Below, in pieces: positions 23,169-50,034 of a DNA stretch of 64,000 bases (positions within the stretch are counted from its first letter, which is position 1; each line of letters begins with the position of its first letter). This DNA comes from Euprymna scolopes (taxonomy: Eukaryota), in NCBI GenBank assembly GCA_053919585.1, contig CM132804.1; one strand, 5' to 3'. The notes beneath the pieces are model-generated. The model worked only from the letters and a program-made list of their open reading frames with translations, made no database searches and was not told the DNA's origin. The position numbers and the translations under genes are program-made.

Positions 23169-23476
23169 ATATACGGCACAATCGCGTTGACACACCGGTT
23201 CTCGCCAGATCAACGAAGTTAAGCAACGTTGGGCCTGGTTAGTATCAGATGGGTGACCATTTGGGAATTCTAGGCGCTGTATGTGCTCTCCGCTTATCTC
23301 TGCATTTGTTTCCAGTCGTCCTGTACTTCACTTGCCACTGGTATTTAACAATGTCGTCTCAGGAGAGGTGTGGTTGGAGATTGCGCACTTACTGCCACAA
23401 AAATTTCACGCGCAAGCCACCCTTCGTTGGTATCCATCGTCTGTCCAAGACTGATGGAGCATGCTACTTTTTTTAT
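23169..23476 (+). mobile_element. 5S rRNA-derived SINE (SINE3-like) or 5S pseudogene with body
   Basis: 23169-23284 aligns with 5S rRNA (gaagttaagcaacg, gggcctggttagta, gatgggtgacc, tgggaa, gctgta). A non-5S segment follows and ends in a T-run. Confidence 0.75.
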
Positions 23477-23880: not shown

Positions 23881-24297
23881 AGAAATAAAATGAGACAATA
23901 CTTTTCCACATTTCAGAAATAAAACTAGATAATAACTATCAATGCTTTATTAATAAAAATTGGCCAATAAAATAAAAATGCATTTTAGGGACTATGTTGA
24001 ATTTTAGATTAATATCAACGCTAAAATATTTAAATTACCCATCATCATAGCGCGGATGCGCGTATATAAACGCATGCGAAGTGACGTCACCGGTGTAGAA
24101 AAAAGGACGATAAGAAGAGAACAGGAAACGTCAAGCACAGAGACGTCATAAGGTTCGAGATCTCGTGAGAGAGCCGGATAACGTTCTGCATCACCTAGGT
24201 GACGTCACGACTGTACCAATCTATCTATACTCCTATAATTTTCTTTATGTGTGTGTACTCATATTCATATTAAGCCCCTTTTCTTTTCTATTAAGGT

Positions 24298-24460
24298 ATT
24301 TATTTGCTTCCCCACGAAAGCAACTGTGACACAAGCTCGTTTTTAATGTGGGGAGAAACCCAGCTTCTCTTAAAACAAGGGTAAAACTCTGACAGTATCC
24401 AAAAAAATAGTAATTGTCTCAGTATGAATGGTTTCCCCTGTATTGACCAAGGGCCAATTA
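24298..24460 (-). mobile_element. U2-headed SINE family, headless copy
   Basis: Body and tail (tatttgcttccccacg..gacacaag.tcgtttttaatgtggg) match the copies at 37251 and 47095. Confidence 0.7.
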
Positions 24461-24464
24461 ACTT

Positions 24465-25060
24465 TTCTTTTTTTTACATGGAAATCACCACTTATCAAGG
24501 CCCAGAGGCAACTCGGGATAAGGGTTATAGCCTGTACAATAATCAATGGGATAATATCGTAGTAATCGTTAGTAATGGATATTTGATAAAGTGTTTGACT
24601 TAAGGGGCGGTTTATCAGGAATTTGTTTAACACTAACCCTAACACTAACCCTAACCCGAAGACATCTAAGTTGTAGTCAGGTGGGAAACAGGCAAACGAA
24701 AGAGAGTTCCACGGGCATGCATTTCTAAGAAAGAAGCTTTGTTCATGGAATCTAAGCTTTGATTTAGGCACAGATAAAGAATGGGGAAAATTATTGAAAG
24801 TGGTTTCAGCTAGACGAGTTTTTTTTCGTGAAAGACTGGCGAGGGGGACCAGAGATTGGAGCTCAGATGAGCGCTTGCCATAGAATTAACGATAAAACAA
24901 AGACAGACTCTCAACATCTCTTCTGTGGGAGAGATATATCAGGGAAGAGAAACTAAGCCACGAAGTCTATTTTGTACTCTGTCAAGGCAAGATAGGCTAT
25001 TTTTAGCAGCTCCTGCCCAGATGTGGCAGCAGTATTCCATCCTTGGATGTACTTGGCTTG
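24465..25060 (-). mobile_element. CR1-group LINE family B, 3' remnant
   Basis: MEYCCHIWAGA and FHEQSFFLRNACPWNSLSFACFPPDYNLDVF motifs. Confidence 0.85.
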
Positions 25061-25460: not shown

Positions 25461-25606
25461 TGCAACGTTTCGGCTAATTTGACATTTGACCGTCTTCAGG
25501 CATGTTGGTTGTTGTTTGGAAAAAAAAAGTAGAAAAGTTACCCCCTTCTTTCCAAACAAAAACCAACATGCCTGAAGACGGTCGAAGCCCAAACTGACCG
25601 AAACTT
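25461..25606. ncRNA. Inverted pair of minimal hammerhead motifs
   Basis: Plus strand: TGC-CTGAAGA-CGGTC...GACC-GAAAC. Minus strand: TGC-CTGAAGA-CGGTC...AGCC-GAAAC-GTT-GCA. Confidence 0.65.
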
Positions 25607-25924
25607 CGCACAAATAACACTCACGATTATGACAATTGTGCGATCAATACAAGTAATATAATTTGATATTAATTCGTAATATTTCAGAAATAAAATTAGT
25701 CAACGGGCTAAGAAATAAACTAGTACAATAATTATGAACAGTTAAAAAGGGGCGATAATAACTCCTAGAATTAAGATATTAAAACATTTTTTTCAATTCT
25801 TCAGAGCGAGAATGATATAGAATGAGAAATAGTTATTAGTGACGCTGAATAAAATAATGTAATTATTTTAATTTTTCTAGAATAAGATATGATAAAACAA
25901 TTTAATTGTTTAAAAAATAATTCG

Positions 25925-26405
25925 TAGCTTAGTAGGGGATGTCCTTTTCTCTTCCCTGCAACCTCTATCCCACGAAAGGAACGTTTCGAGCCTGTCTGTT
26001 TTATCGTTATTTCGATGACAGGTGCTCGTCCGAGAACCAATCTCTGGTCCCCTCTCACCAATCTTTCACAAACAACACCCGTCTAACTGAAACTACTGTC
26101 AATAATTTTCTCCACCCTTTATCTGTGCCTAAATCAAAACCTAGATTCCATGAACAAAGCTTCTTTCTTTGAACTGCAGGCCTGTGAACTCTCTTCCGTT
26201 TGCCTGTTTCCCATCTGACTACAACTTGGATGTCTTCAAGTCCAACATAAACAAATTCCTGATGAACCGCCCTTTTAAGTAATCCAAATTTGCCAAATCT
26301 CTATTACTAACGATTACTACATTATCCCATTGATTACTGTACACGCAATAATCCTTATCCTCGAGTTGCCTTCGGGCCTGGATAAGTGGTGACTCCTATG
26401 TAAAA
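25925..26405 (+). mobile_element. CR1-group LINE family B, 3' end
   Basis: LFYRYFDDRCSSE..FHEQSFF, family B 3' UTR, A-rich tail. Confidence 0.85.
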
Positions 26406-26698
26406 AAAGAAAAAATATAATAGAATAATTTCCCATGTTTCAGAAATAAAATCATACGAAATGGGAAATACATTAGTGTTACAGAATAGAATAAGGTAAT
26501 TATTTTCATTGTTTTAGAATAAAATATGACAATAATTCTAATTGTTTGAGGTATAAAGTAGAATAATTTCCCATGTAATTTAAAAAAATAAAACGATATA
26601 AAATAAAATAATTTCCAATGTTACAGAATATAATGGAAGCAATTTATTAGATATGACTATAATTTTTTGTTTTATATTTAAAATAGCATAATAATTCT

Positions 26699-30070: not shown

Positions 30071-30194
30071 TAGTTTTCAAAGTCTACATCTGGTTAGAGG
30101 ACGATACAACGATGGGGTGAATGCATAAGTAGCTGGTTCTTCTTTAGATAAGAGATAATAACTATGTCAAGTTTCAATTCCCTACTACTAAGAT

Positions 30195-30373
30195 CTTTTG
30201 GCCAACATCAAAGTGTAGTATCTGTTCTTCCGATGCTGCACTTCCATTTCTTGTTTTCTTTCGGTGGAGGATCAGTCCTTCACGACTGAGACATTTTTTT
30301 TTATTTCTGTACATTTTCTCCACGTTAAAAAACGACCCTGGTGTCTGTCCCGTGGGGAGGCATAGTAAATGGG
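30195..30373 (+). mobile_element. U2 snRNA-headed SINE-like element with TSD
   Basis: Head cttttggccaacatcaaagtgtagtatctgttctt matches the U2 5' region. TSD tactaagat at 30186-30194 and 30374-30382. Confidence 0.8.
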
Positions 30374-30449
30374 TACTAAGATAAGTGGCTTGGGGCCATT
30401 ACTTATTGAACGCCCGTTCTATTTTTCTGAGTTTTTACATTATGATTAC

Positions 30450-31889: not shown

Positions 31890-33155
31890 ACCGCTAAGTT
31901 TCCTGCGCGTTATGAGTAAGTTGCTGGAATCTTTGTTAAATAGAGAAGTAATCAATCATCTTAGCAAAAATAACCTTCTTAGTGACACGCAATATAATTT
32001 CCGTTCTGCTAGATCTACAGCAGATGGGCTTAGAGTTATATCTTAGAGGATTAGCGAATCTCTCAACGGAGACTACCTTTCTAGGGCAATTGCTCTTGAC
32101 ATATCTAAAGGCTTTGATAGAGTATGGCACAAAGGTCTACTTCACAAAATCTCCAGCTACGGAATAGTTGAAAATGTCTTCTCAATTATAAAATCATTTC
32201 TCTCTGATAGACTCATAAGAGTAGTGGTTGATGGGCAGAAATCATAAGCTCACAGTATTAATGCTGGAGTCCCTCAGGGGTCCATCCTGGGCCCAACTCT
32301 CTTCCTGATCTCCATTAAAAATCTTCCAAATCACATCCTTATATCATTCGTAGACATTTAAGCTGATGACAATACTATATATGGTAACACATCTAAAACC
32401 GTAAACGACTAAGTTCACTCCGATTCTCTCTCCTCTGATCTTGAGCAAATGGTACAATGAGGAAAAGGTGGCTTGTTACTTTTAATGCATCTTAAACCAA
32501 GCTTTTATCTTTACATCATCAACGCTATTATCGCCATATGGGCTCAATTGAAATGAATGGCTCTCGTCCTCGGGAGGCCTCATGTTTTGCCAAGCTTCTG
32601 GGCTTGACCTTTTCTCTTGATCTGAAATGGAACACATACATTAAATCCGTTGCCAAAGTCGCTGAAAAAATGGTGGGATCCTTCTCTCGATCTAGTAGAT
32701 ATCTCACTCCTGATTCAATTCTCTATCTATATAAGAACCAGGTACGTCCAAGGATGGAGTACTGTTGCCACATCTGGGAAGAATATGCTAGAAAGTACTT
32801 ATCCTGCCTTGATAGAGTTCAAAATAGACTTCGTAGCCTCGTAAGGGATGTCCTTTTCTCCTCCCTACAACCTCTTTTTCACAGAAGAGATGTTGCGAGT
32901 TTGTCTCTGCTTTATCGTTATTTTCATGGACGCCTGTGGAATTGTCTTCCGTTTTCCTGCTTTCCAGCTGACTACATTCTGATTGTAGTCAAGTCTAACG
33001 TAAACAGGTTTTTGATGAGCCGTTCCACATAAGTTAACAAATTTACCGAATTTCCATTACTAACGATTACTTTATTGTCCAATTGTCTACTGTACACTCT
33101 TGAACCCTTATCCCCGAGTGGCTTCTTGGCCTTGATAAGTGGTGATGACGTTGTA
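31890..33155 (+). mobile_element. CR1-group LINE family B RT remnant (longest copy)
   Basis: [32 protein letters not shown] and RPRMEYCCHIW motifs, with multiple stops. Confidence 0.9.
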
Positions 33156-33196
33156 AAAAGTACTATTTCCATTATCCTTATCATATATATATAAAT

Positions 33197-35395: not shown

Positions 35396-35989
35396 CAGCT
35401 CTCTCTCCACCCTCTCTATCTCTTCCTCTTGCAAATTTCGTCATTTTTTATTGCCTTTTTTTAAGTGGAGAAAAGGGATTAATACTGTTGTGTTGTCGGT
35501 TCGTATCCTTGAGTGTGTTTATATAATGAATCTGTTGTTAAATGCCGGATCTAACTGGACTACCTGTCACACGACACGCCCGCAATATAGAGGCACACTT
35601 TGAACCATTAATGAGCGCAATTAATCAAAGGCAACATTGTTAAAGAACAAAAGGTCAAATTAGGTACGACCTGAGAGGATTATATTTCGATGACTTACGT
35701 TTGCCTTTTCATAACTTGCTTTCTTTACACAATTTCACCGCCACATATACTTACTATTCTCGAACACAATTTTTATTTTTGTTCCTTTTCTCCACACTGG
35801 TGTCTAACTCTATCCCGTGGGGAGAGAGTGTAAATAGGAACATAAGAATATAAGAATGCGATTTACGAACGTTAATGAATAAAAAATGTGAACTTTAAAC
35901 ATGGCGGCTACGACTTAATATTTTATTTCTTTGAACTTCTTTTTTCCCATTAACATCATTTATTTTATTTTTCGCAAGAAACGACACGT

Positions 35990-36163
35990 TTGCCTTTAGG
36001 AACAAAGTGTAGTATCTGTTCTGATACAAAACTTCACCTTTTCTGTCCTCAGACAATGGAGGAGAAATCCTTCATGATTCAGATAATTTTTGTTCCTATC
36101 CAGAGTGCTTCTTTTTGTGTAGCTGGATATTTCCTCCCATTAAAAACCGACCTTGTATCTAAC
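35990..36163 (+). mobile_element. U2-headed SINE copy, split by a P-like transposon (resumes 38140-38176)
   Basis: Head aaagtgtagtatctgttctgatac. The tail gcctccgtggggaggcaagtaaata lies after the insertion. Confidence 0.75.
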
Positions 36164-36486
36164 CGTGGCTACCGAGAGTAAAGAAGGCCGGTGCACATGA
36201 CAGCGTGACGTCATTATCAGATTCACTTGTAGGAATATGCTCTAGGATATCAGCAGCAGTTTCGTCTAGTTTTCAGTTTGCTGTTTAACATGGTGTATTC
36301 TTGCGTTGTTACAAATTGTCGGGGAAATTATGCAAAAGGCCCCAAAGTACATATATTTTCTTATCCTGAACATTCTCGATTTGGATACATGCCATTAGAA
36401 GGGAAAATTTTATTCCAACCAAATATAATAAAGTAAGTGATGTTATTTGTTAATAATTAAACGTGTAGTGAATTAGAATTGTATTC

Positions 36487-36863
36487 AAGTGCTTTCATAA
36501 CATTTGATAACATTGTTAATATAAATTAAAGTACTTTCATAACGTTTGATAACATTGCTAATATAAATTAAAGTACTTTCATAACGTTTGATAACATTGT
36601 TAATATAAATTAAAGTACTTTCATAACGTTTGATAACATTGTTAATATAAATTAAAGTACTTTCATAACGTTTGATAACATTGTTAATATAAATTAAAGT
36701 ACTTTCATAACGTTTGATAACATTGTTAATATAAATTAAAGTACTTTCATAACATTTGATAACATTGTTAATATAAATTAAAGTACTTTCATAACGTTTG
36801 ATAACATTGTTAATATAAATTAAAGTACTGATAACGTTCGATAACATTGTTAATATAAATTAA
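36487..36863. repeat. 42-bp minisatellite, about 9 copies
   Basis: Unit aagtactttcataacgtttgataacattgttaatataaatta, nearly invariant. Confidence 0.95.
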
Positions 36864-37250
36864 TGAAACAATACTATTTATTGCTAATACAGCAAATATT
36901 ATGTTGATATTTTTAACTGTTTATTTTCTTATAAGGCTAAAAAGTCTATCAGGAAGGTTGAAAATTTAATTTAATTTTGTTTTAGGTTTTAAAATTATAA
37001 ACAAATAATTTTTACATGAGAATAATTGTCAAAATGTTTTGTTAATAATAAATAAAACCTTTCATTGAGTATGTCCAAATATTTTAAAGTTCTATATTTT
37101 TTCTAAAGTCGGTTTGAAAATTATTCACCTCGTGGCTATTAATGAAATTAGCCGTGACTGAGCGTTATATATTAAAATTGATTGTTTCTCTTTAGAATTA
37201 TAAACAAATACTTTTTACATGAGAATATTTGTCAAAAATATTGTTTTTAA

Positions 37251-37451
37251 TTTATTTACTTGCCTCCCCACGAGGCACAGTTAGACACAAGGTCGGTGTT
37301 TAATGTGGGAAGATTTAGCTCCCCAAAAAAGGTCACTCTGGATAGGAACAAAAATAAAATTAAAATTGTCTCGGTCATGAAGGATTTCTTCTCCACTGAC
37401 CGAGGACAGAACAAATAAAGTGTAGTATCAGAACAGATACTACACTGTGAT
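37251..37451 (-). mobile_element. U2-headed SINE copy
   Basis: Minus strand atcacagtgtagtatctgttctgatactacact...gcctcgtggggaggcaagtaaataaa. Confidence 0.8.
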
Positions 37452-38578
37452 TATTATTATTGTAAATGTTTGTTTACTATTTTTTCTTAGATTTTAGCAA
37501 TAGTTTACATTATGGTAGGAATGTTTTCTTTAATTATGCTTTTAGGTATGTGAACATCATTTTCGGCAAGAGGATTTAATAAAGAAGTCAAGATTCGATG
37601 ATAAAACGTTGTGAAATAAACACGAAAGATGAGAACATTAGTCCGAATAATCTCTAAATTTCCAAAAAATAATATTCAACCCATGTGATTTTTCTCTAAA
37701 TTAAATTAAAAAAATATTTCTGCACTAGTAACTTTTATTGTTTGTTTGTATTTAAATTATTTTTTTTATTTCAATTTTGTGTATTTTATCGTTTGTTTTC
37801 ATTCTTAAAATTATTTATCGATGGTTTTCACTTTTAAAATTATTCATCGTTGGTGTGTAATATGTTTTTTAATTCTTTGTTTCCTAACTTCATAATTCAG
37901 TATTAAATTGTATATTGCTTTAAAATGACTTAATTTTGAATAGATAATATTTATATTTTATATTGAATAAAGTTCAGTTTAAGTATTAATCGAACTGTGT
38001 TTCTTTTTCTTTTTAAAAATGTTTTATTGCTCTTTTTCAAATGGCCCTGATATAGTACTGACAGTCTGACAAATCTTACCTGCATTGCCTGCAGACATTT
38101 TTCAGTTAACAGGCCTTCTTCTTACTCTCAGTGGCCGTGGTCTAACCCTGCCTCCGTGGGGAGGCAAGTAAATAGAACTATTTTTGTTAGCCGTCTTTCT
38201 TGATCACCCATCACCATCAACAAAAGAAATCCGTAAATCAAATTATACCATTAAACCTATTTTTCATTTATAAACTCACATTGTCTAGGGTTCGATTCTA
38301 GCCTTTTCTTGATATCAGTTTCACTTATCTAGTCTGCCTCTTTACTTATACGAGAAGGGGGCAGTCCTGCTTATGTAAGATTTAAGAATAGAGTAAAATG
38401 TGTTTCAAGAGGTTTATCAGTTATCTTCCTTTAATATTGTTAAGTTATCTCCCTTTAGTATTGTTTATACCGTTCAATGTTGAGAAACAAAATCCTTCCA
38501 ACACATTATTAAATAATACAAAACAACTGAAATATATTATTGAACCAAATGTTATTTAAACACTAATATAATAAAATA

Positions 38579-38910: not shown

Positions 38911-38959
38911 TATAATATCAGCATATACTATTTACGATATATTCATCATGAATATAGAT

Positions 38960-39367
38960 GAAAGGTCGTTTTTGTAAATGGAGAACAAGAACGAAAATAA
39001 AAATTGTCACAGTCGTGAAGAATTTATCCTCCACTAACTGAGAACAAAAAAATTGAAGCGTAGTGTCAGAACAGATACTACACTGTGATCTTGGCCCGAA
39101 GGCCAAGAAGTATTTATTTGCTTCCCCACTAAGCAAATTATGCACAAGGCCGTTTTTTAATGTGAAGAAAGAGGGAAGGGGGAGGGAAAAGGGTATCAGC
39201 TCCCGATGGGTGGGAAATGGGAGCTGGAGAGTGACAATTGGTATGAAGGGTTTCCCCTACATTGACCAAGGTCTTATATGTTGGGTTGTCCCCATATATG
39301 GTCTTTGCTAGCAGTATCTGCTGAACCAGATACTACACTTTGATCCTGGCCCGAAGGCCAAGAATAC
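38960..39367 (-). mobile_element. Two head-to-tail U2-headed SINE copies
   Basis: Heads ATACTTCTTGGCCTTCGGGCCAAGATCACAGTGTAGTATCTGTTCT (from 39113) and TTCTTGGCCTTCGGGCCAGGATCAAAGTGTAGTATCTGG (from about 39364). Confidence 0.85.
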
Positions 39368-39769
39368 CGACATATTTATAAGAAATGTGCAGATATTTAT
39401 AAGAAATATTAATAAAAGAAATATTTTTCAATGCTTTACCTATTTATTTAGGAATTACTTGCGATAAAACAATATATGTTTATAGAACCTTTTATGTTCG
39501 CGTAAATATCCACTCACAGAAACGTAGTCATTTTTCTTTGCGGTACAAGCTAAACAAATATGGCTACTTTGCTCATATTTGGTATTTATGCCGACTTAAA
39601 ATGCTTAAATCAAGTGAGACAGAGCAACTCGCTCATTTAAATTTGGCGCCTCCAAGGTATGGTTGCTACAAGTATGGTAGAGATGAACTTATTTGAGAGG
39701 GTGGAGCTTAAAGTTCGGTTCTTAGCGTGCGTTATTTTTTTTTTTTTTTTGTTTATTTTTCAGGAACCC

Positions 39770-40395
39770 CAGTGCGCATCATAGAATGGACGAAATTAGA
39801 ACGTGCTTACGAAGACACCTCATCTCCTTGAGGGGCGATCTGTATTGACCAGCACGGTCCCCTGATTTATCACTGTGCGACTATTGTTTTTATGGGGATA
39901 TCTAAGATCAATTGTTTACAACGATCGTCCAAGCACCTTGACTCACCTGAAAAACAACGTCCGTCCAGCTGTCACCAACATATCTATTGATATGCTGGAA
40001 CGAATTGACCGAAACTTCAGAGTTCGATTAACTCAGTGTATGTGTGTGTGTGTGCAGTCAGCACCAACACTATTCAGGGTTTAACCGGCTTCCTCCTTCG
40101 GAGGAAGTTTCATGGGATTATGAAATTCGCAAGCGGCCCCCAGTCGCATGTATATCCCCGTTAGGGGAGATGACGACGTTAGGTTTTTGCAACTTTTTGC
40201 AGGGAGGTGTCGACGTCCTCCTACATACAGCACCTGGACTTCCCAAATTGGTCACCCATTTTAGTAATGACCAGGGTGAACGTTGCTTAACTTCGGTGAG
40301 CTGACGGAAACCGGTGTGTCAACGTGATTATGCCGTGTTAACTCAGTGTATAGAGAAGAAAGGACGCCATCTTACTGATATCATCTTTAAAACTG
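39770..40395 (+). mobile_element. Tc1/mariner (DD41D-like) transposase C-terminal remnant
   Basis: PARSPDLSLCD..FLWGYLRSIVY..RVRLTQC, continuing after the SINE as IEKKGRHLTDIIFK. Confidence 0.8.
40042..40337 (-). mobile_element. 5S rRNA-derived SINE (SINE3-like) with (CA)n tail
   Basis: 5S-like head about 40337-40224. 14-bp TSD ttaactcagtgtat at 40028-40041 and 40338-40351. Confidence 0.9.
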
Positions 40396-45017: not shown

Positions 45018-45624
45018 TAAATATTCACAGGTTTTTTATATCAATTTATCCTGTTTCTGTTTGTATGCGAGTGATACAACATTTCAAATTTTTACTTTTA
45101 TTCAATCATTTAAAATGTTTTAATAAGCACTTGTTCATATTAGAGTGAGAAAGAAACCCTACTAAACTAAGGCCATTATTATTTTACTCAACGCAATATC
45201 TTTGATTTTCCTTGCATGAAAAATCAATCTTATCTATAAGTCTAATTTCCTGAGGTTGCAAATAGAGACTTAATTGCTTTAAAAAAAACAGTCTATTACA
45301 AATGTTCATTTAAAAAGTTATTGTCTTTCATTCTTTAAATTCAAAGTTCTGTACTCGGCCAGTAAAAGAGAGATCCTTCTAAATAAAAGCAACTTCTATT
45401 TTCTCCAACGCAATGTCTCGACATTTTTATCACATGAAAAACAAAACCATTCAGCTTAAGTTTAACCTCGTGGGGAGGAAAGTAAATAGACACTTAATTA
45501 CTTAAAAAGTGCTTTATTTAATGAATTAATTTACTTAATGGCTTAATTAATTAAATTTAATTTAAAAGTTATTGCTTTTCATACACAATGTTTTTTTTCA
45601 TGGGTTTATTCTATATATTTTAAT

Positions 45625-45904: not shown

Positions 45905-46998
45905 ATTTAAATTGAATCTCTTTATTATTAAAATTTACTTTATTTTAAAAAAGAAATTAATTCATTTTTATTTTAATTAGTTTTCTCCTATTGTGTCAAA
46001 ACTTACCGAGAGGAAATATTTTAAAGATCAGATAGCCAAAAAGGACTCACTGGTGCTTTCTTGCTTGGACCAATATATAAAACTGCAATGAAATTAAAAA
46101 GAGGACATAAAGATTGGAACGACCAAAAAAGATTATGTCCATTACCTAATGATGCGTTAACATCTCAGAACAAGGATACCGTTCTTTCCTACTCTAGCCG
46201 TAATAGTTATTCAACAGATGTCGCATATTTTGAGTCTTACAGTCTTATTAAAAATTCGACACCCGGTACTTGTACTGGGCTGGTCACTGAAGTGTGGTGT
46301 ATGCACAGATGCTGCACTCAAATTAATTGCCCTTAGTCAATGGAGGGGGAAACCCGTATATAGTAAGGCAATATTATTTTTGCAGAATGTCCCTTTTGAG
46401 GGGAGCTGGTTATCTCCCACAGTAAACCGACCTTGTATCACATTTTTTATCATGGGAAACAAATAAATAACCAGTCTTACTAAACTTTCTTGATATGCTA
46501 TTGAATTAATAAGAGGTGATGTTTCATCAAATTCAATCTTGCTAATGCTTTGCTCTTAGACGTGTAGGTGATAAGACTTTACAAATCTAATGTCTATACA
46601 AAGTATATAATCAAATATAGCAAAGTCAAGAATGCTAAAAAAATGCTTATAGGAGACATGATGAAACAATAGAAAACCTTTATTTTGGGGGTTGATGTAA
46701 GAAATGATGACGATACACTTTTGTATAAATAGTTTTGGAGACCAAATGTAGAGAAAATATTTCCTAAATACAAAAGAGATTGCAATGCTAACTAGGGGAA
46801 TGAAACACAATCACAGGGCCATCTCTAATTATAGTGCAACTAGTGATGTTTTTGAAGAGGAAGTTGCTGGTTTCTTAAAGTAATACAACAATGTATCTGT
46901 AATTAAGGTTATTTTAGTAGACAACACCAATACAGGTTGGATTTGATAACACTTTTTGAGAAGAAACATCTACAGACACAATTACACATCATTAGTTG

Positions 46999-47072
<74 letters not shown>

Positions 47073-47094
47073 ACTTCTATTTAGAGTTTTATTT

Positions 47095-47293
47095 GCGTCG
47101 CCACGAAAGCAAATCCGACACATGGTCGTTTTTAATGTGGGGAAAAAACCAGCTCCCCTAAAAGTAGGCAAAAAAAATAGTAATAATAATTCTCCCAGTA
47201 TAGAGGGGTTTCCCTCCATTGACCGGGACAAACTACCTTAAGTGCAGCATCTGCAGAACAGATATTACACTTTGATCCCGGCCCGAAGGCCAA
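47095..47293 (-). mobile_element. U2-headed SINE copy with TSD
   Basis: Head ttggccttcgggccgggatcaaagtgtaatatctgttct. Direct repeat agagttttattt at 47083-47094 and 47294-47305. Confidence 0.8.
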
Positions 47294-47344
47294 AGAGTTT
47301 TATTTTTTTAGGTTCAAGATGTTTTGAAACTTTCACTGTTGTCA

Positions 47345-47885
47345 CATCTGGGCAGGAGCTGCTAGAAATACTTATCCTGCCTTGATAGAGTTCAAAATAG
47401 ACTTCGTAGCCTCGTAGAAGACGTCCTTTTCTCTTCCATGCAACATCTTTCTCACAGAAGAGATGTTGAGAGTTTATCTTTGCTTTATCATTATTTTCAT
47501 GGCAAGTGCTCGACTGAGCTTCAATCTATGGTACGCAACTCCAAACTTTCACAATAAACACGCGTCTATCTGTAAACACTATCCCCCCACATTTTATCTG
47601 TGCCTAAACCTAAACGTAGATTCCATGAGCAAAGCTTCTTTCTTAGAACTGCACACCTGTGGAATTGTCTTCCGTTTTCCTGCTTTCCAGCCGACTACAA
47701 TATGTTTGTCTTCAAGTCCAATGTAAACATGTTTTTGATGAACTGTTCCATTTAAGTCAACAAATTTACCGAATTTCCATTACTAACCATTACTATATTG
47801 TCCAATTGACTACTGTGTGCTCTTAAACCCTTATCCTCGAGTGGCCTCTTGGCCTCGGTATGTGGTTATGCCTATGTAAAAAAAT
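47345..47885 (+). mobile_element. CR1-group LINE family B, 3' end
   Basis: HIWAGAAR..LDRVQNRLRSLV, family B 3' UTR, A tail. Confidence 0.85.
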
Positions 47886-48045
47886 ATTACCCCAACAAGC
47901 ATTTACATCAGTTGGTTGTCCTCTGAATGCCTGCTTTTATATTAAAGAAATAAGCGAACGTATACGTTAACAGAGACATCTACTTGAACATGTAATAGGC
48001 ATTACAAGAGAGAAAAGCAATTTCTGCATGGAAAACTGGCTCTAC

Positions 48046-49926
48046 AAATCAGACAATATGGTTAACTAATGCTATCAGACCAATATAGTTAACAATATAG
48101 TTAACTAATGCTATCAGACTAATATGGTTAACAATATGGTTAACTAATGCTATCATATTAATATGGTTAACAATAGGGTTAATGAGACTAATATGTTGAC
48201 CAATATGATTAACTAATGCTATCAGACTAATATTATGAACAATATGGTTAGCTACTGCTATCAGACTAATATAGTGAACGATATGGTTAACTTTTGCTAT
48301 CAGACTAAAATGGTTAACAATAATTTAAACTAATGCTATCAGACTAATACAGTTTGAAATATCATTAACAAATGCTATCAGACTAAAATCGTTAACAATA
48401 TGTTAAACTAATGCTATCAGATTAAAATGGTTTACAATATAGTTAACTAATGCGATCAGACTAAATGGTACACAATATGGTTAACTAATCCTATCAGAAT
48501 AATATGGTTAACAATATGGCTAGTAATGCTATCGGACTAATATGGTTAACAATATAGTTAACTAATGCTATCAGATTAATATGGTAAACAATATAGTTAA
48601 CTCATGCTATCAGAATAAATGGTTGACAATATTGTTAACTAATGCTATCAGACTAATATAATTAACAATATGGTTAATTAATGCTACCAGACTAATATTG
48701 TAAACTATATAGTTAACTCATGCTATCAGAAAATATGGTAAACAATATGGTAAACAAATGCGTTAAGACTAATATGGTTAACAATATGGTTAACAATATG
48801 GTTAACAATATGGTTAACAATATGGTTTACTGATGCTATCGGACTAATACGGTACACAATGTAGTTAGCTAATACTATCAGACTAATATATTTAACAATA
48901 TTCTTAACTACTGCTATTAGACAATAATAGTTTAATATGGTTAACTAATGCTATCAGACTAGTATGGTTTAATATATATTTTACTAATGCTATCAGACTA
49001 AAATGGTTTAAAATATGGCTAACTAATGATATCAGGCTAATATGGTTAACAATATGGTTAACTAATGCTATTAGGCTAATATGATTGGCAATATGCTTAA
49101 TTAATCCTGTCAGACTAAAATGGTTAACAATATAGTTTACTAATGCTATAAGACTAAAATGATTGACAATAGGATAAACTAAATCTATCAGACTAAAATG
49201 ATTGAAAATATAGTTAAGTAATGTTATTAGACTTATACGTTTTACAATTTAATTTACTAATTTTAACAGTCAAATAATGGTTTACGATATGGTTAACTAA
49301 TGCTATCAGACTAGTATTGTTAACTATATGATTTATGTTATCAAATTAACATGGTAAACAATATAGCTAACTAATGTTTCAGACTAATAGGGTTAACAAT
49401 ATCATTAACAAATGTTATCAGACTCACATGGTTTACAATATTGTTAACTAATGCTATCAGACTAATATGGTTAACAATATGGTTAACTAATGTTATCAGA
49501 CTCACATGGTTTACAATATTGTTAACTAATGCTATCAGACTAATATAGTAAACAATATAGTTTACTAATGCTACCAGATTAATATGGTAACAATATAGTT
49601 AACTAATGGTATCATAACAAAATTGTTGGCAATATTGTTAACTAATGCCATCACAGATTAATATGGTTTATAATATGTTTAACTAATGCTATCAGATTAA
49701 TATGGTTGAAAATATAGTTAACTAATGCTATTAGACAAAAATGGTTTACAATAGGTTAACTAATGCTTTCATATAAATATGGTTAACAATTTGGTTAACT
49801 AATGCTATCAGGCTAATATGATTGACACTATGGTTAACTAATCCTGTCAGACTAAAATGGTTGACAATAGGATAAATTAAATCTATCAGACTAAAACGAT
49901 TGAGAATATAGTTAACTAATGCTATT
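48046..49926. repeat. 39-bp satellite array (about 48 units)
   Basis: Consensus actaatgctatcagactaatatggttaacaatatggtta, diverged tandem copies. Confidence 0.95.
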
Positions 49927-50034
49927 CGTATCAGTGACCTGTGATACGTGTTGCATGTAGCGCCATCTTGTCGGAAAAAGAATTGCATTTTGCCTTGTAG
50001 TGTCAGTACGTCGATAAGAGAAAGATAAGCGATG

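Follow-up and report, generated by a model that had tools for sequence, protein, structure and literature searches.

U2-headed SINEs of a mollusc genome and their link to LINEs that home into U2 sequence

Why should a short repeat that begins like the U2 spliceosomal RNA recur about ten times within a 64,000-nucleotide window (the whole stretch of DNA analysed here) of a mollusc genome (GCA_053919585.1, contig CM132804.1)? A sequence-only reading had proposed that these repeats, two of which lie in 38960-39367, belong to a very abundant, retroposed SINE family headed by the U2 5' end, and we first confirmed that the repeat is real. A 21-nt core of the head, allowing 3 mismatches, matched at 30204, 35998, 37434, 39072 and 39327, while 0 matches are expected by chance, and seven copies could be aligned over about 190-260 bp. 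BLAST searches with a family consensus or with window copies recovered 30200-30376, 35766-35841, 36000-36094 plus 38140-38175, 37253-37451, 38964-39109, 39111-39365, 47088-47293, 24297-24452, 45466-45488 and 46306-46467, which include all the full and partial copies listed by that reading. Both target site duplications (TSDs) it had named, of 9 and 12 bp, are exact: TACTAAGAT at 30186-30194 and 30374-30382, and AGAGTTTTATTT (+ strand) at 47083-47094 and 47294-47305. Two of its points needed correction. The two copies in 38960-39367, described there as one repeat occurring twice, belong to different families, and the tail is not a TAAA-type repeat but a fixed end, ...GTAAATAGGAAC in family A and ...GCAAATAAATAC(C) in families B and C.

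In a second step, the window copies were sorted into three related non-coding families, A (about 190-230 bp), B (about 260 bp) and C (about 220 bp), each of which carries a head equal to U2 nt ~5-47, a body of its own and a shared ~60-nt tail (...ACATTAAAAA-CGRCCTTGTGYCTAA...GTGGGGARGCAA-TAAATA...). Family A occurs in a short form of ~190 bp and a long form with an extra ~40 nt. The copy at 30195-30373 (+) is a full-length short form (81% identity to the A consensus over positions 15-192) with a head decayed at its 5' end, flanked by the 9-bp TSD, while 35766-35841 (+) is a 5'-truncated copy (consensus positions ~103-192) with an internal deletion that ends in ...GTAAATAGGAAC. The copy at 35990-36169 (+) is a long form with a decayed head, the body and the first part of the tail. 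It is cut off in the tail by an inserted ~1.96-kb element at 36170-38131, which has terminal inverted repeats (TACCGAGAGTAAAGAAGGCC... / ...GGCCTTCTTCTTACTCTCAGTG), a probable 7-bp TSD, TCTAACC, and a 42-bp tandem repeat at 36399-36902; the rest of the tail (...GTGGGGAGGCAAGTAAATAGAAC) lies on the far side at 38132-38176 (+). The inserted element itself contains another long-form A copy at 37253-37455 (-), whose head is 5'-truncated and starts near U2 nt 27. The copy at 38927-39114 (-) is a short form with the best-preserved head in the window (CTTCTTGGCCTTCGGGCCAAGATCACAGTGTAGTATCTGTTCT) and a decayed tail (89.7% identity over 146 nt). It is preceded head-to-tail by the family B copy at 39110-39369 (-), which has a U2 head, its own ~160-nt body and the tail ...GGGGAAGCAAATAAATAC abutting the 5' end of the next copy's head. 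Family C is represented by a full-length copy at 47095-47293 (-), whose 12-bp TSD partly overlaps the AAATAAA of the tail, by a headless (5'-truncated) copy at 24296-24460 (-) ending in ...GGGGAAGCAAATAAATACC, and by a headless C-like copy at 46306-46467 (+) that is 70% identical to the 47095 copy over its positions 54-219. An isolated tail fragment (GTGGGGAGGAAAGTAAATA) lies at 45466-45488 (+). Just upstream of the 24296 copy, at 24470-24545 (-), lies an unrelated short repeat (...AACCCTTATCC-CGA...GGCCTTGATAAGTGGTGA...TGTAAAAAAAA) that ends in an A-run; this different, A-tailed retroposon family was also seen just downstream of the SINE copy at one other genomic locus. None of the seven ORFs of 130 aa or more in the window overlaps a head-bearing copy and none has a Pfam hit, although one of them, 24370-24771 (-), overlaps the headless copy at 24296-24460. 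No LINE copy was found in the window.

The heads were then compared to the U2 of the same genome (5.9 Gb, 925 contigs). A conserved 36-nt U2 pattern matched 1,185 times, mostly in a tandem array of 764-bp units (contig C9, about 168.86-168.97 Mb), and the gene in the unit scored 161 bits against Rfam U2 (RF00004). The SINE head matches this U2 at 42 of 45 positions over nt 5-50, including the extra A of that U2 in GATCAAAGTG. After nt 47 the similarity stops, as the best local alignment of the SINE body to the rest of U2 scored 16 compared to 15.3 +/- 2.3 for shuffled sequence. The first 4-6 nt of full-length A copies (AAGAGA...) match neither U2 nt 1-4 nor the U2 upstream flank. In E-value mode, Rfam U2 hit 38927-39114 (-) at 45.8 bits, against a gathering score of 46, and four other copies at 25-33 bits; the 45.8-bit alignment to the whole model is carried by the head plus generic hairpins. 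The heads also share changes that real U2 lacks (CTTGGCC-UUCG-GGCCAAG, which keeps stem-loop I as a perfect 7-bp stem), showing that they are inherited by the family and not recopied from U2 each time. In predicted folds of all three families, the branch-point-recognition part of the head pairs with the first bases of the body in a 10-12 bp hairpin.

Retroposition and abundance were assessed across the whole genome. A BLAST search with one window copy gave 3,007 first-look candidates, of which the best 40 were 84-88% identical. In an alignment of 29 such copies (on average 91% identical to their majority consensus) with their flanks, the unit has a sharp 3' end (...GTAAATAGGAAC) without an A-tail. 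TSDs of 7-15 bp of ordinary, non-U2 sequence bracket head, body and tail in many copies (genomic loci L003, L004, L018, L020, L023 and L029), with a few variable bases between the TSD and the head. A 30-nt family A body motif, with up to 3 mismatches, matched 43,937 times. The B/C tail joined to ATCTGTTC (U2 nt 39 onward) was found 59,293 times, mostly in arrays spaced 183-218 bp, and the B tail joined to the 5' end of a head, the junction seen at window position 39110, was found 340 times. Each reversed-pattern control gave 0. Overall, the proposal of an abundant, retroposed, U2-headed SINE family in an invertebrate is supported, and the accompanying remark that Keno and Utopia elements insert into U2 close to where the similarity ends was correct and turned out to be the key.

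The spacing of U2 units in the array showed gaps of about 7.9 kb. One of these (locus L043) reads, in U2 orientation, U2 nt 1-47, then a 7.6-kb element, then U2 nt 22-199. The element encodes an 880-aa ORF1 with a zf-CCHC knuckle and a 1,145-aa ORF2 with Exo_endo_phos, RVT_1 and zf-RVT domains, and a second, diverged copy within the array (locus L044) has the same ORF2 domains. The array is interrupted at intervals by ~7.6-kb insertions of at least two diverged families of APE-type, L1/Tx1-like LINEs; in L044 the LINE tail abuts nt 1 of the next U2 gene and not nt ~24. A genome search with the ORF2 C-terminus gave 23,350 first-look candidates, and more than 100 scored copies had 97-100% amino-acid identity, on nearly all large contigs. 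At 30 LINE 3' ends in 29 of the 30 loci examined, the LINE end ...AAATAAATAA is followed by GATCAAAGTGTAGTATCTGTTC (U2 nt ~24-47). What comes next is the rest of real U2 (3 loci), the 5' end of another LINE copy (10 loci), a family A body (5 loci), a family B body (4 loci), a family C body (5 loci) or other sequence (3 loci). This junction of LINE tail to U2 nt ~24 occurs 2,834 times in the genome, often at 7.6-kb spacing, again with a control of 0. The LINE therefore recognises the U2 motif wherever it lies, and the SINE heads act as dispersed landing pads. B/C units do the same at nt 39, which is the 3' flank published for Keno and Utopia (PMC4640811).

The family B 3' region is similar to the LINE 3' UTR (z = 9.1, with 0 of 300 shuffles reaching it), whereas the A and C bodies and tails showed no significant similarity to the two LINEs that could be read. 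Among homologues of ORF2, 89 hits were found, none with an informative name. In the ENA assembly ERZ21867824 (protein P0001, 62% identity) the related LINE also stands in head-to-tail tandem, with ORF1 and ORF2 repeating every ~6.8 kb. Two other relatives, at 58-60% identity, have no U2 motif at their ends. On one ENA assembly contig (relative of ORF2 at 60% identity) the related LINE is bracketed by a 22-nt direct repeat, ACACCTGTGAACTGCGTGTCTT, and has no U2 motif; a relative apparently has a different specific target, as is usual in the Tx1 group. The 5' part of the LINE was present in contigs of several small sequencing runs, and at 0.37-0.44 of words in three runs recorded as poly-A RNA, which is only suggestive of expression because a multi-copy LINE could also assemble from sparse DNA.

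Taken together, we interpret the repeats as copies of a superfamily of short, non-coding, non-autonomous, SINEU-like retroposons that belong to one system with Keno/Tx1-like LINEs of the same genome (probability roughly 0.78). The upstream U2 piece left at a LINE insertion ends at nt 47 (or 48), exactly where the U2 similarity of the SINE ends. We infer that the head is the upstream half of the LINE target, which would have been carried into the transcript of an element sitting in a U2 gene (read from the U2 promoter, or by 5' transduction) and then inherited by deletion derivatives that kept the head and a LINE-type tail. Which LINE moves which SINE family is likewise inferred, and the assignment to Tx1 or Keno rests on domains and target only, not on an RT phylogeny. 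As every LINE or SINE copy brings a fresh copy of the target motif, new LINEs and B/C SINEs insert into old heads and build nests and head-to-tail arrays. How the SINEs are transcribed is also inferred: transcription by pol III may be unlikely, since two T5 runs lie in the family A consensus. No tRNA, 7SL or 5S model hit the copies. Some results fit this interpretation less well. The tail end of family A (...GTAAATAGGAAC) differs from that of the young LINE (...AAATAAATAA), its own partner LINE was not identified, and the 3' junction of the young LINE lies at U2 nt ~24 (nt ~22-25) and not at nt 39 as published for Keno. The copies in the window are old, dispersed members with ordinary TSDs, so that at least part of the spread, family A above all, was not U2-site specific, and for A the head was not needed as an address.

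An alternative explanation, which we consider unlikely, is that the head was added by template switching, whereby the reverse transcriptase reached the 5' end of a LINE or SINE RNA, jumped onto U2 snRNA, and the chimaera then became a master copy, the link to the U2 target of the LINE being a coincidence. Kojima proposed template switching for the recurrent 5' addition of U1 or U2 pieces in crocodilian SINEU (PMC4494074), and the recurrent junctions of a tail directly onto the 5' end of a head, namely the 340 in the genome and those at window position 39110 and at loci L019, L026, L022 and L008, are of the kind that RNA-to-RNA jumps would produce. However, a jump onto U2 RNA should start at the U2 3' end or at scattered internal points, while here the U2 piece ends at nt 47 in families A, B and C and in both LINE families, which is the upstream target boundary of the LINE itself. 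In addition, the few bases after nt 47, (T)CAG, are shared between LINE 5' ends and SINE bodies. It is even less probable that the head is not part of the mobile unit and that headless elements always land just downstream of pre-existing U2 fragments. For the young LINE and for B/C units in arrays, the sequence upstream of each unit is indeed the head of the target, with a duplicated piece of U2 nt ~24-47 or nt 39-47, and headless copies exist in the window at 24296, 35766 and 46306. Yet TSDs of ordinary sequence enclose head, body and tail at many independent loci and at window positions 30195 and 47095, which contradicts this view for families A and C, the heads carry family-wide diagnostic changes not present in the 1,185 real U2 matches, and headless copies are what ordinary 5' truncation would give. 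Ordinary U2 retropseudogenes, or decayed copies of a variant U2 gene, are refuted despite the 45.8-bit alignment of 38927-39114 to the whole U2 model, as the real U2 scores 161 bits, similarity beyond nt 47 is no better than to shuffled sequence, and about 44,000 copies share a non-U2 body and a LINE-like tail.

The closest published parallel is SINEU (SINEU-1, -2, -3) of crocodilians (Kojima 2015, PMC4494074), which are also short non-coding retroposons with a 5' head taken from U2 snRNA and recurrent head-to-tail additions. They carry oligo-T runs inside that argue against pol III transcription and are tied to Tx1 LINEs that share U2-derived 5' ends, with Tx1-Mar clustering with the U2-specific Keno (PMC4494074; PMC4758252). 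In that case the target is a Mariner transposon, the heads are mixed U1/U2 pieces, their origin was left open, and the 2015 paper found none outside crocodilians. Here the host is a mollusc, the head is a single fixed piece (nt ~5-47), the preferred target is the U2 motif itself, including the heads of the elements, and the copy number is in the 10^4-10^5 range. Similar to Keno, the U2 snRNA gene-specific Tx1-group LINE (Kojima and Fujiwara 2004, as cited in PMC4494074 and PMC4640811), the LINE read here is of the APE type and inserts at a fixed site in the 5' third of U2 genes. However, the young LINE makes a ~23-26 bp duplication and is dispersed on nearly all chromosomes, because SINE and LINE heads supply targets outside U2 genes. 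Keno is reported from vertebrates, lancelet and cnidarians, and in the literature searched, and without comparison to Repbase, Dfam or SINEBase, we found no paper linking SINEU or Keno to molluscs. Utopia, the U2-targeting NeSL-clade LINE with a restriction-like endonuclease (RLE), shares the target gene and nearly the same site and is also found in tandem within U2 arrays (PMC4640811), but the LINE here has an AP-endonuclease domain at the start of ORF2 and no RLE, so it is not Utopia. Ceph-SINEs of squids and cuttlefish (Akasaki 2010; re-analysed in PMC5786205) are abundant SINEs of cephalopod molluscs with a shared body domain, tRNA heads and RTE-derived parts; the two Ceph-domain motifs quoted in PMC5786205 are absent from families A, B and C.

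SINE heads are normally explained as internal pol III promoters, whereas snRNA heads have no internal promoter, and the only published case in the literature searched left their origin and transcription open. The present heads end exactly at the cut site of U2-homing LINEs in the same genome and are reused as insertion sites tens of thousands of times, which gives a concrete possible origin, a captured target flank that doubles as an address. It would also show how a transposon restricted to a low-copy target can escape that limit by spreading its own target. In practice, these units, possibly well over 100,000 in the genome, would be missed or misfiled by SINE finders that look for tRNA heads. 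Published surveys call SINEs scarce in decapodiform cephalopods (PMC8967140), a comparison that applies only if this genome is one. More tentatively, the LINEs and their SINEs could form an autocatalytic homing system, in which the elements carry the recognition site of the LINE (U2 nt ~22-47) at their 5' ends, so that every insertion adds a target and the number of landing pads grows with copy number. The head would then be kept because it lets the new cDNA join the cut target by homology, as upstream rRNA sequence does for R2. If so, captured target flanks, and not promoters, would be the general origin of snRNA-headed SINEs, and this would explain how a LINE specific for a low-copy gene reached thousands of copies on nearly all chromosomes.

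The window also contains other repeats. Two 5S rRNA matches above the Rfam gathering score lie at 23169-23285 (+) and 40222-40340 (-) (70.6 and 57.1 bits), the first directly after a run of N. They share only the ~120-nt 5S part while their flanks are unrelated, so they are not one 5S-headed family and look like dispersed 5S pseudogenes or retrocopies. A near-perfect ~100-nt palindrome at 25485-25586 hit several plant and animal miRNA models on both strands, below their thresholds, and looks like a MITE-type hairpin rather than a miRNA gene. An unclassified dispersed repeat of at least 500 bp is present in three or four copies (61-90% identity) at 25884-26406, 32793-33159 and 47366-47882, with inverted matches at 24658-24952 and no Pfam domain in the overlapping ORFs. 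Finally, a satellite-like array with 39-bp and 77-bp periods spans about 2 kb at 48004-49964.
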